64,000 nt of DNA, taken from assembly GCF_006345805.1 (NCBI RefSeq), contig NC_043010.1:63302001-63366000 (forward strand). The letters run 5' to 3'. This document shows, piece by piece, positions 3,458 through 46,943 of the stretch. The DNA comes from Octopus sinensis (Eukaryota). Position numbers and translations under genes: made by a program. How positions within the stretch are numbered: position 1 is the first letter of the stretch; every line of letters starts with the position of its first letter. Below the pieces are notes generated by a model. It was not told the DNA's origin and searched no databases. It saw only the letters and a program-made list of their open reading frames with translations.

Positions 3458-4250
3458 TTGTGCCAGGTAGAAACACCACTGATGCTATATTCCTGGTTTG
3501 GCAACTGCAGGAGAAATGCCTAGCCAAAGATAAACCCCTATATTTGGCTTTCGTGGACTTGGAAAAAGCCTTTGACAGGGTCCCCCGATCCCTTATTTGG
3601 TGGCCAATGTGGAAACTGGAGATTGACGAATGGTTAATAAGGGCTGTACAGGACCTATACAGAAAGGCCGTTAGTAGGGTTAGGATTGGCAATGAATATA
3701 GTGAAGAATTCCGGGTAGAAGTAGGGGTCCACCAAGGATCAGCTCTCAGCCCCCTCTTATTCATCATAGTCCTCCAGGCAATAACAGAGGAATTCAAGAC
3801 GAGTTGCCCCTGGGAGCACCTCTATGCTGATGACCTGGCCCTCATAGCAGAATCACTACCAGAACTAGAGAAGAAACTTCTAGTGTTGAAGCAAGGTTTA
3901 GAATCAAAAGGCCTTAGAGTCAATGTAGCAAAGACCAAAGTTCTAGTAAGTAGAAAGGTGAACACATCACACACCCTTTCAGGTAGGTGGCCTTGCTCTA
4001 TCTGTAGAAAAGGTGTAGGTAGAAACTCCATAAGACGTACCCAGTGTAAGCTATGAACGCATAAGAGGTGCAGCAACATAAAAAGGAAGATTAACGAGAA
4101 GATAGCTTTCGTGTGTGGCAGATGCACAGGGGCAATAGACACCACAGATACTCAGAAAACACATTTCATCACATGCCAGGGGGGAGAAACTAGAAGTAGT
4201 CGAACTGTCCAACCTATGCCAGCATGGAAAACAGACATTAAACGATGATG
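3458..4250 (+). mobile_element. RTE-clade LINE fragment: reverse transcriptase core plus PHD-like Cys/His finger, internally deleted and joined to the element's 3' tail
   Basis: RT motifs FVDLEKAFDRV, GVHQGSALSPLLF and LYADDL. There is a premature TGA at 4054-4056 (probably Trp) with the frame continuing beyond it. The fragment ends in gtccaacctatgccagcatggaaaacagacattaaacgatgatga. Confidence 0.9.
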
Positions 4251-5461: not shown

Positions 5462-6157
5462 TTAGGTGTTCCTTGTGTGCACACGTTGGTGTTTTTTTAA
5501 ATCACTACTTTGAGAATACTGTGCAGGACACATTTCACATTTGAATGGTTTTTCACTGCTATGGCTCATTCGATGTCGCTTCAAGAGACTGTATGTAGAG
5601 AAAGCAGCCGGACAAACTTCACACTGGAATGGTTTCTCACCCGTGTGTGTCCGGTGGTGCTGCTTCAGTGAAGAATTCCGAGAGAAAGCAGCCGAACAAT
5701 AATCGCATTTATAGGGTTTCTCACCGGTGTGGATCATGCGATGTTTCTTGAGGTCACAGTTTTGGGTGAACGCTGCTGAACAAAGGTCACACTTGAACGG
5801 CTTCAAGCCCGTGTGATTCATGTGGTGACGTTTGAGTAAACTACGCGTGGAGAATGCAGACGGGCACTCTTCGCACTTGAATGGTTTCTGCCCTGTATGA
5901 GTGAGGCCGTGTTGTTTGAGAGAACTGTTGCGCGAAAACGCCGCCCCACACGTGTAGCAGGTGAACGGTTTCTCCCCTGTATGAATCATGTTGTGTTTCT
6001 TTAGATCACTGCTCTGTAAGAACGCAGCAGAGCACACATTGCACTGGTATGGTCGCTGACCCTCATGGATCAACTTGTGCCGTCTTAAGAGACTCAACGT
6101 TGATAGCGAAGAACCACAGATCTGACAGTGACACATCTTGACCAATACATCAGCCAT
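5462..6157 (-). CDS. C2H2 zinc-finger protein, 8 tandem fingers, 231 aa, no recognisable effector domain (ZNF-A)
   Basis: Eight C-x2-C-x12-H-x3-H fingers with TGEKP-type linkers and no internal stops. An in-frame TAA ends 15 nt upstream of the ATG (context acaacATGg), which fixes the start. Confidence 0.93.
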   Translation of the reverse strand: MADVLVKMCHCQICGSSLSTLSLLRRHKLIHEGQRPYQCNVCSAAFLQSSDLKKHNMIHTGEKPFTCYTCGAAFSRNSSLKQHGLTHTGQKPFKCEECPSAFSTRSLLKRHHMNHTGLKPFKCDLCSAAFTQNCDLKKHRMIHTGEKPYKCDYCSAAFSRNSSLKQHHRTHTGEKPFQCEVCPAAFSTYSLLKRHRMSHSSEKPFKCEMCPAQYSQSSDLKKHQRVHTRNT

Positions 6158-25589: not shown

Positions 25590-25623
<34 letters not shown>

Positions 25624-26028
25624 GTTTCAAATTTGAGTTTTGCCACAAGGGCAGCAAGTTTGGGGAAGAGGGATAGTCGACCCCAGTACTTGACTGGTAC
25701 TTAATTTATCAACCCCTGAAAGGATCAAAGGTAAAGTCGACCTTGGTGGAATTTGAACTCAGGACGTAGTGACAGACAAAATACCATTAACCATTTCATC
25801 CACCAGCACGCTGCCCTAATAATAATTTCCAATTTTGGCAATTTTGGGCGAAGGGGTCAGTTGATGAAATTGACCCCAGCAGTGCTCAACTTGTACTTAT
25901 TTTATCGACCCTGAAAGAATGAAAGGCAAAGTCGACCTCGGTGGAATTTGAACTCAGAATGTCAAGACAGACAAAATACTGCTAAGCATTTTGCCTAGTG
26001 TGCTAACGATTCTACCAAGCTTACCACC

Positions 26029-26079
<51 letters not shown>

Positions 26080-26471
26080 TGGTTTCAGATTTTGACACGA
26101 AGTCAGCAAACTTTTAGCAGGGTTGGTTACTCAATTCCACCAACGCCAGGCCAGCGCTGAACTGATCCTTATTTTATCAATTCAGAAAGAATCACTGGCA
26201 TTTGAACTCAGAATGTAAAGATCAAAAATGCCGCTAAACATCTTGTCTGACATTCTGCTGGCTCACTTTGGCAGAGGGCCAGTATTTTAAGGAGAGGGGT
26301 TTAGTTGGTTACAGCAACCCCAGTGTTCAGCTGGTACTTTATTTTAGCGACCCTCGAAGGGATGAAAGGCAAAGTTGACCTTGGCAGGATTTGAGCTCAG
26401 CACAAACAGGGTGGAGAAATGCCACTAAGCACTTTCTCTGAAATGAGAATGATTTTGCCAGCTTGCCACCC

Positions 26472-26520
<49 letters not shown>

Positions 26521-26912
26521 TAATAATAATAATAACAACAACAACAATCAGTAACTTAGACTCAAGGCCACAAGATTCTAGGGGTGGAATGCAGTTGATG
26601 ACTAAATATTTAATTGACATGCTAAAGGAACGAAAAGCAAAGCCACCCCTGTTGAATTTGAACTCAGTTCTGTAAAGAAATGAAATAATAATAATAATAA
26701 TCCTTTCTACTATAGGCACAAGGCCTGGAATTTGTGGGGAGCGGGTTAGTCGATTACATCAACCCCAGCACTTCACTGGTACTTGATTTATCGACCCCGA
26801 AAGGATGAAAGGCAAAGTTGACCTCGGCAGAATTTGAACTCAGGATGGATGAAATGCCGCTAAGCATTTTGTTTGGCATGCTAATGTCTGTGCTAGTTCG
26901 CCACCTTAATAA
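24590..26912 (-). mobile_element. Head-to-tail array of at least 8 SINE family B copies separated by (AAT)n tracts
   Basis: Eight tttgaactcag-like B-box segments (about 24835, 25250, 25753, 25948, 26202, 26391, 26658, 26833), all in the same orientation, mostly with (AAT)n tracts between copies. Confidence 0.8.
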
Positions 26913-27424
26913 TAATGATATTGATAAATCTGATAATAACAATAATAATTGTAATAACAATATTAATTCATCATCGTCATCTTTTAATGAAATGGTTGTT
27001 TGTTAGTGAAAGAAACAAAGTTTATATTAGAGGCAGGATGTTTAGGTTGGCAACTGTGAGGTATAACTGTGTGAATTTTGGGACAATTTTTTTTTTATAA
27101 AGAGAGAAATATATATATATATATTTATATATATATATGTATATTAGAAACGTACAACATGGGCAGCAGTGACAACCAAAAGGCACCAGCTGCACATTAC
27201 AGTAGATATATTAGAATGGAACACTGGAAATTGGTAAGGCAAAAAAAAAAAAAAATTAAAATAATAATAATAATGATGATGATGATGATGATGATAATAA
27301 TAATAATAATAATAATCAATGATGAAAAATATTTTAAAAAAAAAAACAAACATTTAAAAATGTTGATACATACAGTTAGTGCATGTATATAAAATGCATT
27401 GATACAGAATTACATGAATATATA

Positions 27425-30019: not shown

Positions 30020-30865
30020 AACACATTTCTCTCCTACCACATCATGATTCTCTCTCAAACACTGTCTTGCAACACAAGACACCTCAAATCTTTGGTCACC
30101 ACGGCGCAGAACATTGGCAAATTTTTTCTTATCTGCTTCCCCTCTGGCTAAATATACCTGTCTCCTAGCTTCTCTTTTCGCAGTCTGATACAATTCCCTA
30201 CTACTGCCATTCCTCCAGTCCTTCCAAGCCTGTCTCTTGTCTCTAATAGCCCTGTCTACAACATTGTTCCACCACCACGTTACCATGGGACGAGATGGGA
30301 CTTTGCTCCATCCACAGATCTGGTCAGTGGCACTCAGCAGATTGTCCCTAGAAACCTCCAGTTGGTTTCCACATTATGTGATGCCATATCCCCTTGTATT
30401 TCGTCAAAAGCTTCGAGTAGGACTTCTCTAAATCTCTGTCCATTTACAGGATTTTTAAGTTTCCAGACCCTTCTCCTCCGAGCTGGTCTTCTTCTGGGCA
30501 GCCATTTGGCCCTGATCCAGAAGTCGCTAACTACTAATCTATGTTGAGGAGTACATTCCTCGCCTGGAAAGGTTTTGGCATTTATAAGCAGCCTTCTTTC
30601 CCTCTTTCTAGCGAGGATGTAGTCGATCTGGCTAGTGTGTCTGCCAGAACGGTAGGTGACTAGGTGAGAGGTGGGTTTCCTGAAGTTGGTATTGCAAATC
30701 ATAAGGTCATTTGCATCGCAGAACTCCAGCAGCCTGGTTCCCTCCTCATTGCGAGAACCATAACCGTAGCCCCCGTGTATGCCATGGAAGCCCCCGACAT
30801 GTCCATTGAAGTCACCTGCCACGAAGAGAAGGTCACTGTCATTTGTCAACGAGGTAGTCTGTAAT
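30020..30865 (-). mobile_element. RTE-clade LINE fragment: AP endonuclease C-terminus and linker
   Basis: Motifs VAGDFNGHVG, RNEEGTRLLEFC, SQIDYIL, PQHRLV and TWWWN. Frameshift or deletion near 30290-30340. Confidence 0.88.
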
Positions 30866-31982: not shown

Positions 31983-32567
31983 TACATACATACATATATA
32001 TATATATATGCACATACATACATACATATACACACACAGAACAAGAACATAAATCGCAATTGCTACAAATACTGTATCTTTCTGAAGAAATGTTCAAGCT
32101 GGAAAGAGGAGTCCGTGATGTTTGCATAAAACGTATTCAATAACAGAGTCTGTCATATACTTATATACTGTAAGAGGCATCAAGGCAGGAGACACTGAGC
32201 TAAAAATCAATCAGATGCTTTTACAACACAGCAGCTCTTCTCCATTAAAAAAAAAAGAAATTTTTTTAAAAATTTAAATTATCAAGAGGAGCCATAACAG
32301 TCGTCAAAACTTTTGGGTGAGTTTCTAATATTAGAATTTGGCCAGCACAGATTCTGCTTTTTCAGGGTAGGGGGGAAGAAATGTCTCACTTTGTAGGACA
32401 GACTGCTTTGACAAAATTTTCATGAAATTCCAATGAAGGAAGTGTTAACACCATTGATAAAATGAAATTCGAAACACGGGTTGAGTTATAAAATCAAAGT
32501 TGAGGAAACATAATTAAGTAGACAGGGAAAGAAAAGGTTCAAGGTGTTTTTAATTATTATTATGATG

Positions 32568-32599
<32 letters not shown>

Positions 32600-32726
32600 C
32601 ATTATTACTATCATTACAACTACTAATATTAACAGTTTGTGCTGCTGCTGCTGTTGTTATTCATATCTATGAATGTTCCAAATATTATTGGTTGTTTGAT
32701 TGGTTAAGTTTTTAATTATTTAATTG

Positions 32727-35144
32727 TTATTTGTCATTGCCGTAGTGGTCGGAGTTACTCTTAGAAGGTGCGTGAATGCCTTGGATGTTGTTCCAAGAAG
32801 TTTGTTTACCTTGCTTGACCCCACAGGAATAGCCGGAAGGAACGCTAGGCCAGCTAGAACCAAGCAAAGGAGGCATGGGGTACCCTCTAGACCACAGATA
32901 GTTGCTCTCCCAACTCTGTGGCATTTCGTGCAGATATGCTGGGGTGGATGTATGAGAGACTGGGATCGAAGGGGTCTGTAACTGAGTGGATTGCACATGA
33001 GGATCTCGGTGATGTGCTAATGACATGGGCCCGGGGTGGGGTGAACCACCCTGATTGACTTTCATGCTGTTTTTATGTGAAGACGATGAGATTGGTGGTG
33101 ATGAAGAATTTGGTATGTGCTGATGATGTTTGTTGCTGTGTGTTTCTGGGCTGTATGTATTAAATGGGGAAGAGCTTTTGTTCTGCGGATGTGTGGAGTG
33201 AGTGGGCGTGCTGTTCCCACTCAACATTGAAGGGGGCGGTTGAGGGAGGGGAGGTTCGCAGCCGGGTCGAGGCCGTTTGTGAGTGGCAATATGAGATTCA
33301 CTCTCACATGTGCTGAATGCAGACGGAGGCTTTTCTTGGGTGTGGTTCGAGGACTGATGACTCATTCGGCTTCCACTGTTCAACAAAGATGAAGAAGAGT
33401 TTGGAGATGACAGCGAATGCATTTGCGATGCCGGGGGTTGTGGATTCTTTGTGAAGAGTTCACAACCGGTACGTGTGCGCCTATGATTGTTTAAGTTTGC
33501 CTTTTGCGAGAACGATTTCCCACAACTTTCACACTTAAATGGCTTCTCTCCAGTATGAGTACGAAGATGAGTTTTCAAGTTACCAGCCTGCGAGAATACC
33601 TTAGGACAAAGGTCACAACAGTATGGTTTCTCTCCAGCATGGGTGCGAAGGTGAAGCTTCAAATTACCTCTCTGGCTAAAAGCTTTGTCACACAGGTTAC
33701 ATTTAAATGGCTTTTCCCCTGTGTGTGTTCTCATGTGATTTTTCAAATTTATTTGAAGAGTAAATTCTTTGGGACAATAATCACATTTATACAGCTCCCC
33801 GGTGTGGATACGTTCGTGGATTTTGAGGAAAAACTGGTTACAAAACGGTTTCTTGCAGAACTGACAATAGTAGAGCTCTCCTGTGTGAAGTCTTTTGTGG
33901 TCGTTTAAATTAATCTTCTGGGAAAAGGCTTTCCCACAGACATCACAGGCAAAGGGTTTCTCACCTGTATGCGTTCGGAGATGGAGTTTTAAGTTACCTC
34001 TTTGGCTAAAAGCTTTTGAACAAACATGGCACTGAAACGGTCGGTCACCAGTGTGTGTTCGTTCGTGATTTTTAAGATTGATTTTCTGTGAAAATGTTTT
34101 GCTGCAATATTCACATTTAAACACTTCCCCAGTGTGTGTACGCTCATGGATCTTCAAAAAAAACTGGTTACAAAACGATTTCTTGCAGTAGCTACAATAA
34201 AATAACTCTCCAGTGTGTATACGCTTATGATCATTCAAGTTGATCTTTTGAGAAAAGGCCTTTCCACATATGTCACACGCAAATGGCTTCTCTCCTGTAT
34301 GGGTCCTCAAATGAAGTTTTAAGTTTCCTCTCTGACTAAATGCTTTATTACAGACATTACATTGGAATGGTTTCTCCCCTGTGTGTGTCCTTAAGTGATT
34401 TTTCAAATTTATCTGTAAAGTGAAAGATTTTGTACAGAATGTGCATTTATACAGTTCCCCTGTATGTGTACGTTCGTGTATCTTTAGAAAAAACTGGTTA
34501 CAAAACGGTTTCTTGCAGAACTGACAATAGTAGAGCTCTCCTGTGTGAAGTCGTTTATGGTCGTTTAAATTAATCTTCTGGGAAAAGGCTTTCCCACAGA
34601 CATCACAGGCAAAGGGTTTCTCCCCAGTGTGCGTTCTAAGGTGAAGCTTCAAATTACCACGCTGACTAAAAGATTTATTACAAACTGTACACTGGAATGG
34701 CTTCTCCCCAGTGTGAGTTCGCAGATGATTTTTAAGGTTGATTTTCTGTGTGAAGGCTTTTCCACAGTAACTGCACTCAAAAGGCTTCAGTCCTGTGTGA
34801 GTGAGTTCATGGTTCTTTAGAAAAAACTGATTTGAGAATCCTTTTTTACAGAAACTACACTGGAAATCTTTTTCCAGTGGCTGATGTTGCGGTTGCTTAT
34901 TGTCATACATATGAGAGGGAGAGTGATGGGGTGGAAGGGACTCTCTGCCAGCTTCGTCCATTGCTGAAGGTGATCCTAGAGTGGTAGGAACATCTTTCCT
35001 GCCCATCTCACCTGAACTGTAAGTCTTTTCAGCAAGTGGCATTGTCTTTTCTGGACATTTTGGATAACTGCTTGGATAAACTGGCTGCCCACTGTACAGC
35101 GGTGGTTGATTGGTCATCGGAAACATTGGTTGAAAAGGATACAT
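32727..35144 (-). CDS. C2H2 zinc-finger protein, 17 tandem fingers (last one degenerate), 805 aa, with P/S/Y/Q-rich N-terminus and P/S/H-rich C-terminus (ZNF-B)
   Basis: Uninterrupted 2418-nt ORF. The finger array spans aa 94-558 (33471-34865), with TGEKP and TGEL linkers. An in-frame TAA lies upstream of the ATG (ccaagATG). The last finger reads HRRTR, so its second His is lost. Confidence 0.95.
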
Positions 35145-35538
35145 CTTGGCAATGGATTGGTACTTGTGCGATAAGGAATCAGTTTATCCAAGTTTAAAAA
35201 TCAATCAAATGTGGAAATGAGAAGAACATTGAGTATTGTTGTTGTTGTTAATGTTGTTGTCAATGTTGTCGTTGCTGTTTTTGTTTTTTTCTTGTCTGTT
35301 CTATGTATGTCTGAATTGAATGTAGTTTCACAGACGTCACAAGACTAACAATGTTCTCAGCGGCCCATGAACAGAAGACCAGCCTTAAAATCAAAATTTA
35401 TTCAACGTGCCACATACTCATAAGTGTAGAGGATGGTGGGAAAGGATAGATGTATTTCTGGCAACTCCAGGGATTCTTCGAATTCGAATTACATTGGACT
35501 TTGAAGTCTCAACATAGGAGCAGCATGGAAAGTGGCAT
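35145..35538 (-). other. 5' UTR portion of the ZNF-B coding exon with 3' splice acceptor
   Basis: Minus strand reads gttttctctttctttccAG|atgccact, with AG at 35540-35539. The 394 nt from there to the ATG are non-repetitive apart from a short (CAA)-like tract. Confidence 0.7.
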
Positions 35539-46235: not shown

Positions 46236-46943
46236 CTGAACTGGTGAGTGCATTAAATAATGAGGCACTAAAAGAGAATGACTCTCCCCAGACACAACAA
46301 AATATGCTTCAACACACAAACTCACATAAAGAATCTTGCAAACCAAATCCCAAAACGAAATGTGTGTGTGGTAAAAATAGTTACTGTCTTGAGTCCTAGG
46401 GTTCATAGGGCCAGTTACTCCTAGTTACTTGGTTTCCATACTGTCTACATGACTGAGATTGCAACATTGCCCCTGGATGGGATGTCTGTCCATTGCAGAG
46501 TGACTCATTTACAGCTGAGTGGACTGAGGTATTTGGTTTGCAAGATTCTTTATATGAGTTTGTGTGTGGCAAATATATGAGAAACTACCACCTGTGTCAT
46601 CTCTTGTGAAAGGTAGGAGAGTCCAGTTTGCTGGACATTGTTGTAGAGCTGAAAAAGAAGTAATTTCTACTCTTCTCCTCTGGAAGCCATCTACTTGCGA
46701 TACCAGAGGGCGCACACTCTCCTACCCTGATGTAATCTCCAGGGATACAGGCATCCAGCAACAGGACCTCCGTAATGCCATGATGGACCGTGAAGTCTGG
46801 TGTAGCATGGTAAATTCCATTGTCTCGACCACGGTCGAACAATGATGATGATGATGATGATGTGTGTTGAAGCATATTTTGTTGTGTCTGGGGAGAGTCA
46901 TTCTCTTTTAGTGCCTCATTATTTAATGCACTCACCAGTTCAG
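46236..46943. repeat. Inverted duplication of 113 bp whose right arm is split by a LINE insertion
   Basis: 46236-46348 matches the reverse complement of 46531-46567 plus 46868-46943 at 112/113 positions. Confidence 0.9.
46568..46860 (+). mobile_element. 5'-truncated non-LTR retrotransposon (RTE/RTEX-like) 3' end with (GAT)n tail
   Basis: RRVQFAGHCCRA...DREVW C-terminal motifs, then a stop and a (GAT)n tail. Flanked by a 7-bp duplication, TGTGTGT (46561-46567 and 46861-46867). Confidence 0.75.

Follow-up and report, generated by a model that had tools for sequence, protein, structure and literature searches.

ZFY and ZFX, which carry long zinc-finger arrays, have a two-finger repeat period and an acidic activation domain. 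In the linkers that join Krüppel-type fingers, Lys4 touches a phosphate and Pro5 fixes the next finger, and non-reading spacer fingers are known from CTCF (finger 8) and TFIIIA (fingers 4 and 6) (PMC8084297). Expansions of C2H2 genes in coleoid cephalopods have been described (Albertin et al. 2015; Holzinger et al. 2025, PMC12513265). Octopus genomes contain well over a thousand C2H2 genes, and the target, effector or architecture rule is known for almost none of them. Here we analyzed a stretch of 64,000 nucleotides (nt) from Octopus sinensis, referred to as the window (assembly GCF_006345805.1, contig NC_043010.1, positions 63,302,001 to 63,366,000 of the forward strand), focusing on a gene on its reverse strand that encodes a protein with 17 C2H2 fingers. 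We call this gene paralogue B, as it is one of four related genes, A to D. Judged from its sequence and from its relatives, B is probably a functional Krüppel-type poly-zinc-finger protein, most likely a sequence-specific nucleic-acid-binding regulator of transcription, with an array in which canonically linked fingers are interrupted at regular intervals by linkers one residue too short.

The array had been placed at 33471-34865 by an earlier sequence-only reading of the window, and these coordinates proved exact: base 34865 is the first base of codon F94, where finger 1 starts, and base 33471 ends codon 558, the expected site of the second His of finger 17. Pfam zf-C2H2 (PF00096) matched 17 stretches of B with 307 bits, zf-H2C2_2 (PF13465) reached 394 bits, and 16 of the 17 fingers fit the regular expression C-x2-C-x12-H-x3-H, arranged in tandem and with the conserved Phe and Leu. 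Against solved arrays, three fingers gave E-values of 1e-62 to 1e-56, with PRDM9, Aart, ZFP568 and CTCF as the best matches. The finger lengths, 28-28-28-27 / 27-28-28-27 / 27-28-28-27 / 27-28-28-28 followed by finger 17, yield a unit of 110 residues, and Tandem Repeats Finder detected 3.4 copies of a 330-nt repeat at 33625-34750 with 73% matches; both periods agree with those proposed earlier. The helix cycle was likewise found as described, running through NQFFLK(N/I), (Q/L)(K/Q)INLKN, QRGNLKL and QKINLND, with finger 16 diverging to QAGNLKT and finger 17 carrying QKANLNN. Asn occupies position +3 in 13 of the 17 fingers and Gln position -1 in 11. Four fingers carry two Phe residues at +2/+3 (FF), and the three internal ones read NQFFLKI.

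The linkers follow the same period. As the sequence-only reading had noted, those on either side of the internal NQFFLKI fingers are one residue short: six of the 16 linkers (TGEL five times, TGEV once) leave a His-to-Cys spacer of 6 residues instead of 7, while the remaining 10 are of the TGEKP type. HMMER alignment to solved canonical arrays located a one-residue deletion at the Pro, with Leu replacing the Lys. B does not keep the 7-residue TGEKP-type spacer throughout its array, and it departs from the canonical class in array form, not in fold. The frequency of these features was assessed in a background set of 116 unrelated poly-finger proteins comprising 1915 spacers and 2327 fingers. 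Spacers of 6 residues accounted for 31 of the 1915 (1.6%), with at most three in any protein, and FF at +2/+3 occurred in none of the 2327 fingers; Phe was present at +2 in 17 of them and at +3 in 100. The short linkers and FF fingers of B far exceed what is expected by chance.

Module pairs of B differ at proportions of 0.10-0.21 for nonsynonymous sites (pN) and 0.74-1.02 for synonymous sites (pS), corresponding to a pN/pS of about 0.1-0.2 at a DNA identity of 65-77%. The heavy synonymous divergence reported earlier for most modules was thereby recovered, with fingers 4 and 12 as the exception (97% nucleotide identity, pS 0.13). Counted at identical residues, homologous fingers share 197 identical codons where 180 are expected from codon usage, indicating that synonymous sites are saturated; in the control, non-homologous fingers share 636 versus 651 expected. 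Selection against DNA identity between repeats, considered as an explanation for pS values above 0.75, was rejected in favor of plain saturation, the high pS being an effect of the estimator. These comparisons indicate that the array arose by ancient tandem duplication of a finger block, and that the modules are ancient, with their protein sequence held by purifying selection.

Constraint is also evident between species. The B-to-B comparison covers O. sinensis and O. vulgaris, which differ by 8 synonymous and 0 nonsynonymous changes in B, with flanks 1.5-1.8% diverged; the neutral chance of all eight being synonymous is about 3e-6 (S = 495, N = 1920 sites). Paralogue A has 13 fingers in both O. 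sinensis and O. bimaculoides, with pS 0.075 and pN 0.0018 between them, and its array differs by 16 synonymous and 0 nonsynonymous changes. The B-specific fingers 9-11 keep the helices of the family. The earlier claim that purifying selection maintains the array is borne out by the low pN/pS and by the lack of nonsynonymous changes between species, although part of the identity comes from gene conversion. The observations named beforehand as contrary to that claim, namely a ratio of nonsynonymous to synonymous rates (dN/dS) near 1 between modules, low dS or scrambled helices in relatives, were seen only locally.

The 805-residue B protein is encoded on O. sinensis CM016872.1 (63.33 Mb) and O. 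vulgaris OX597827.1 (76.21 Mb), and the window agrees with the O. sinensis locus without a difference over 8418 nt. Paralogue A (P0001, 'zinc finger protein 2 homolog'; 687 residues, 13 fingers, 72% identity to B) lies on the same chromosome about 320 kb away, at 63.65 Mb in O. sinensis and 75.76 Mb in O. vulgaris. Since both proteins lie on the same chromosome in each species, P0001 is a paralogue, and its assignment as an orthologue from another species was rejected. For paralogue C (P0125, 780 residues), the positions are 63.77 Mb (O. sinensis) and 75.65 Mb (O. vulgaris), and paralogue D (P0035/P0135/P0136, about 807 residues) is assigned to that chromosome in each species from a contig of equal length; the family is linked on one chromosome, with Mb positions given for A, B and C only. 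Members of the family and its relatives include XP_029644964, XP_029644900 and XP_029645462. Outside the genus, Argonauta hians has a copy of C inside the same 90%-identity cluster, and Acanthosepion pharaonis has A/B-like and D-like sequences, an A. pharaonis protein being included in the P0121 cluster. These relatives identify B as a member of a small, old subfamily that has so far been found only in coleoid cephalopods (octopus, argonaut and cuttlefish).

Comparison of the four paralogues shows which part of the array is shared. A 6-residue spacer follows each finger ending in ..NLND or ..NLDN, in B, in A, in C of Octopus and Argonauta, and in D of Octopus and of a decapod-type sequence, and has the general form TG(E/D/N)(L/M) plus two residues. 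Because it occurs after these fingers in all four paralogues, the short linker, or hinge, is old and conserved; it is kept in Argonauta and in the decapod relatives, and Argonauta also keeps the FF finger. The unit of A and B consists of NQFFLKI, a hinge, (L/Q)(Q/K)INLKN, QRGNLKL, QKINLND and a second hinge, that of C of NQFFL, RGNxxT and RNSLND followed by the hinge, and that of D, which lacks the FF finger, of three fingers (QINLRN, QGNLRT, KINLDN) and the short hinge after them. What the family conserves is therefore a run of fingers joined by canonical linkers that ends in a short hinge; an FF finger with a hinge on either side is the form taken in A and B. The four-finger module with a built-in spacer finger, as first proposed, is to be regarded as a variant of an older plan, a three-finger block plus hinge that exists in D even without FF.

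A similar revision applies to the end of the array. The sequence-only reading saw a fourth module diverging at finger 16, and the helix there does differ, but fingers 15-17 (QRGNLKL with AGEKPYC, QAGNLKT, and QKANLNN ending in RTRTGCEL) are unchanged in A and almost unchanged in P0121. Because they recur in these relatives, they are best described as a conserved terminal three-finger unit and not as a decaying fourth module. Finger 17 has Arg in place of the second His and a Cys 7 residues past the first His (HRRTRTGC). As paralogue A from three Octopus species and P0121, a partial relative from the cuttlefish cluster, preserve this ending, finger 17 may be a terminal finger of the C2HC type.

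Outside the array, two motifs are common to all four paralogue types. The N-terminal motif, MYPxQP...NQ...Y.GQP.Y...K...K (alignment A2), has the invariant residues M1, Y2, Q5, Q13, Q20, Y23, K29 and K33, and B shows the MYPxQP...KxxxK pattern of the family. The C-terminal motif, PQSWENNYLWSRG, spans about 62 residues with the pattern ...YL..M.QSWE.NY.WSR..P.PP...S.WP, also present in B, and a tail of the form ...C..KQ.KQ..W..IQ..H...K; 27 columns are invariant across paralogue types (alignment A1). An exhaustive phmmer search with the C-terminal 104 residues of B against 1.84 billion representative proteins returned 6 matches, four of them from octopus or cuttlefish sequence clusters and the others P0124 (144 residues, no taxon given) and a weak match to an unrelated repeat-rich protein of 1313 residues; the E-values of 3e-51 to 2e-16 were obtained for family members only. 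Searches limited by their word index, one using a profile of the C-terminal alignment and the other a chimera of both termini lacking the fingers, gave no match or a single one. No Pfam family matched either motif, and a scan of the whole protein at E-values up to 1 yielded finger models and below-cut-off chance matches only, with no KRAB, SCAN, BTB, ZAD or SET domain. The absence of KRAB, SCAN, BTB and ZAD domains noted earlier therefore stands, but the conclusion that the effector is unexplained has to be amended, because conserved terminal motifs exist and are probably the candidate effector of B. An AlphaFold model of the C-terminal 104 residues based on 5 sequences had a mean confidence score (pLDDT) of 53 and no secondary structure, which is weak evidence but fits disorder; the C-terminus is probably a disordered region with short linear motifs.

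Gene conversion has acted on the array as well. The tract shared by A and B extends over 404 nt, from 7 nt before finger 1 into finger 5; beyond it, five A/B differences are scattered up to about 34387 (near 96% identity), after which identity drops to about 77%. Within the tract, pS between A and B is 0, compared to 0.78-0.82 in fingers 7-10 and 15-17. The A gene of O. bimaculoides is about 98% identical to that of O. sinensis uniformly along its length and carries the tract sequence, identifying A as the donor. Ultra-conservation, perhaps connected with RNA editing, had been considered for a 360-nt block of 100% identity, but was rejected because the block reflects gene conversion between paralogues. 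A second block over the C-terminal motif (32973-32794), in which 173 of 180 positions are identical between A and B (pS 0.20), may be an older conversion tract. Within B, two copies of a 134-nt tract match at 132 positions in O. sinensis and at all 134 in O. vulgaris; at the two positions that differ, O. sinensis carries precisely the A-type bases. Since only the O. sinensis copies differ, and with A-type bases, conversion must have occurred after the split from O. vulgaris, and since two independent assemblies agree, the tracts are not an assembly artefact. Gene conversion continues to act on the array, among paralogues as well as from module to module, and the sameness of the modules is in part concerted evolution. 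Most of the array has remained free of conversion for a long time, as pS relative to A is about 0.8 outside the tract. The coordinates of all features of B are collected in Table 1.

Table 1. Features of the paralogue B gene, in window coordinates.
Feature	Position	Strand	Basis or remark
Zinc-finger gene paralogue B, whole coding sequence	32727..35144	-	805 codons plus stop, one uninterrupted open reading frame, MYPFQP to GNDK*
N-terminal motif, residues 1-33 (ends KCPEK)	35046..35144	-	Alignment A2 of four paralogue types
Array of 17 C2H2 fingers, residues 94-558	33471..34865	-	Pfam, regular expression, Tandem Repeats Finder
Module 1, fingers 1-4, residues 94-204	34533..34865	-	Finger 1 linker TGLKP, normal length
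Module 2, fingers 5-8, residues 205-314	34203..34532	-	Finger lengths
Module 3, fingers 9-12, residues 315-424	33873..34202	-	No counterpart in 13-finger paralogue A
Fingers 13-16, residues 425-535	33540..33872	-	Fingers 15-16 and 17 form the terminal unit
Finger 17, residues 536-565	33450..33539	-	HRRTRTGC variant
C-terminal motif, residues 734-795	32760..32945	-	Alignment A1; putative effector or region for partner binding
Short linker TGEL after finger 4	34533..34544	-	Finger lengths, family comparison, HMMER alignment
Short linker TGEL after finger 5	34452..34463	-	Finger lengths, family comparison, HMMER alignment
Short linker TGEL after finger 8	34203..34214	-	Finger lengths, family comparison
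Short linker TGEV after finger 9	34122..34133	-	Finger lengths, family comparison
Short linker TGEL after finger 12	33873..33884	-	Finger lengths, family comparison
Short linker TGEL after finger 13	33792..33803	-	Finger lengths, family comparison
A-to-B conversion tract, 404 nt	34469..34872	-	0 differences from paralogue A
Intragenic tract copy 1 (finger 4 with the adjoining ends of fingers 3 and 5)	34489..34622	-	Matches copy 2
Intragenic tract copy 2 (finger 12 with the adjoining ends of fingers 11 and 13)	33829..33962	-	Matches copy 1

In the recognition code of C2H2 fingers, adenine is the preferred base of Gln at -1 as well as of Asn at +3. Within each unit, the three fingers joined by canonical linkers mostly have this combination and would read NAA triplets, covering 9 bp at once, and the CAA triplet predicted for the ..ND finger would recur every 12 bp if the FF finger takes the normal 3-bp step. 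At the short hinge, the shorter tether and the lost backbone contact would interrupt the continuous wrapping of the major groove, such that the hinge, with or without the FF finger, could act as a fixed spacer or as a surface that reads no bases, the aromatic face of the FF finger possibly being turned toward something else. The predicted target is a long, quasi-periodic A-rich sequence, and the probably disordered terminal motifs would recruit partner proteins. In its most specific form, the proposal is that the A-D family uses a fixed array grammar, in which three-finger blocks, a rigid hinge one residue short and, in three of the four paralogues, a non-reading FF finger measure a long A-rich target with a 3-bp or 12-bp period (NAA microsatellite or satellite DNA, or A-rich RNA), with the terminal motifs as a new effector module; in this complete form we regard the proposal as unlikely. 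An imperfect 12-bp repeat, TGTTGTTGTTAA, which is rich in CAA when read on the gene strand, precedes the start codon of B by 92-141 nt (35236-35285, 3.8 copies). It is also found in the O. vulgaris copy but not upstream of paralogues A, C and D; it loosely resembles the predicted NAA-type site, but CAA microsatellites are common and the resemblance may be due to chance.

Several points weigh against a DNA-reading regulator with periodic spacers. For long arrays, and where Ile or Phe occupies +2/+3, the recognition code is not reliable, and a shorter linker could equally mean that neighboring fingers pack together without binding DNA. A single-sequence AlphaFold model of fingers 3-7 reached a pLDDT of only 37. 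The predicted A-rich site matches the window 6 times compared to 0.12 expected, but every match falls in an A-rich tract of low complexity, which is lost on shuffling, so the excess is not informative. B is available from O. vulgaris and O. sinensis only, and its 17-finger form may be either older or younger than the 13-finger form; the finger-by-finger identities between A and B (73-79%) are ambiguous as to whether fingers 9-12 were gained in B or lost in A. Finally, the exact 805-residue protein is not found in a collection of 15 billion proteins that contains A, C and D of the same assemblies; given this absence, B may be missing from public annotations or modelled differently in them.

The main rival is that FF fingers and short linkers are not DNA spacers but form a surface that binds RNA, single strands or protein. 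Its exposed aromatic residues, two Tyr or Phe ahead of the first Cys and the Phe-Phe pair of the helix, would dock a partner or stack against bases, giving B a role in RNA binding or as a scaffold. The composition of the FF finger fits this idea, with 6-7 aromatic residues and a Phe-Phe pair seen in 0 of 2327 ordinary fingers, and so do the adjoining linkers, which lack the phosphate-contacting Lys. RNA binding is also known for fingers 4-6 of TFIIIA and fingers 1 and 10 of CTCF (PMC8084297). Pfam zf-C2H2_jaz (PF12171) scored above its cut-off at 75 bits, but on stretches that generic C2H2 models match better. JAZ-type fingers, which bind double-stranded RNA, are characterized by H-x5-H and long linkers, whereas all fingers of B have H-x3-H and spacers of 6-7 residues. 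Moreover, 13 of the 17 fingers keep the canonical DNA-reading pattern with TGEKP-type linkers, and the hinge is independent of an aromatic surface, because D keeps it with no FF finger at all. Taken together, we consider an RNA- or partner-binding role of the FF finger unlikely, though it is the alternative to be taken most seriously.

The selection data argue against the two other explanations. If B were a fast-evolving, repeat-tracking zinc finger engaged in an arms race with transposable elements or satellites, its periodicity would result from recent unequal crossing-over, as in PRDM9 or in clusters of KRAB zinc-finger proteins. The surroundings would suit such a history, the region being rich in repeats, with fragments of long interspersed nuclear elements (LINEs) and another zinc-finger open reading frame, and so would the active gene conversion and the finger number, 17 in B versus 13 in A; octopus zinc-finger proteins have also been predicted to match transposable-element sequences (PMC10547256). 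However, synonymous sites are saturated between modules and between paralogues while the contact residues are nearly invariant, the arrays accumulated no nonsynonymous change between species, the opposite of an arms-race signature, and family members occur in Argonauta and cuttlefish, all of which makes an arms race highly improbable. We give equally little credence to B being an unexpressed or decaying duplicate of A whose apparent constraint is due to conversion from A. The copying of the first 404 nt of the array from A and the missing B entry in a public protein collection where A, C and D are present would agree with a silent copy. Outside the tract, however, pS relative to A is about 0.8 and yet the reading frame of 805 codons is intact; five of the eight differences between O. 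sinensis and O. vulgaris fall outside the A-to-B tract and all are synonymous, and the B-specific fingers 9-11 retain helices typical of the family.

The remainder of the window contains a second zinc-finger open reading frame at 5462-6157 on the reverse strand (231 residues, 8 fingers), which has a three-finger period (SDLKK / NSSLKQ / SLLKR). It has the usual 7-residue spacer throughout and carries no terminal motifs of the A-D family. Because this reading frame is also periodic, internal periodicity alone is not special in this genome. Fragments of non-LTR retrotransposons were found at 3460-4056 (forward strand) and 30334-30849 (reverse strand); the reverse-transcriptase reading frame (RVT_1) scored 84.6 bits and an endonuclease-like reading frame 24.8 bits, below the curated cut-off. 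Microsatellites of the (AAT)n/(TAA)n type occur at 25590-27316 and 32553-32616, one of them just downstream of the B stop codon, and some sit in interspersed repeats with many copies in the paralogue loci. A stretch of 205 nt at 46660-46864 is 98% identical to the paralogue A locus of the same genome (L001 5384-5588) and is not among the matches with more than 100 bits to the O. vulgaris locus; this stretch is probably a recent copy of a repeat. No RNA family was detected by Rfam anywhere in the window, including this stretch.

Among the many octopus C2H2 genes, A-D stand out as a small, old and tightly conserved set with a clear structural signature, made up of the hinge that follows one type of finger, the aromatic finger and the terminal motifs. 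If the hinge and the FF finger do set the spacing, they would provide a natural design rule for long arrays, for which engineers have so far used longer linkers only. If they do not, the locus still documents an ancient module duplication under selection, with ongoing exchange by gene conversion. B is part of the coleoid C2H2 repertoire and, like the expansions described there, lies among paralogues on one chromosome of a repeat-rich genome. The large expansion clusters, however, are octopus-specific and comprise 104-495 sequences (PMC12513265), whereas the B family has four members, is strongly conserved and has relatives in Argonauta and cuttlefish. No description of the combination of short hinge, FF finger and terminal motifs was found in the portion of the coleoid C2H2 literature that was available.

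Compared to PRDM9-type minisatellite arrays, B has finger-coding DNA in tandem, changes in copy number and gene conversion in common. PRDM9 repeats, however, are near-identical in DNA and variable at the contact positions (-1, +3, +6), whereas in B synonymous sites are saturated and the contacts fixed. The fingers that merely set a distance between reading blocks in CTCF and TFIIIA provide a parallel for the suggested function of the FF finger; those are single, non-periodic elements with solved structures, whereas in B the role is inferred and the element recurs every fourth finger. ZFY and ZFX share with B a long array in which finger and linker types alternate at a fixed period and purifying selection over long times, but their period is two compared to four (or three plus one) in B, they have no FF finger, and the terminal domains differ. 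With the canonical Krüppel arrays (PRDM9, Aart, ZFP568, CTCF), B shares the finger consensus, the TGEKP-type sequence of 10 of 16 linkers and the residues Gln at -1 and Asn at +3 in base-contact positions. It differs from them by the periodic one-residue deletion in six linkers, where Lys4 and Pro5 are lost, and by the FF finger and the terminal motifs, which those proteins lack. On this comparison, B is an unusual variant of an ordinary class of DNA-binding proteins, not a new kind of system.

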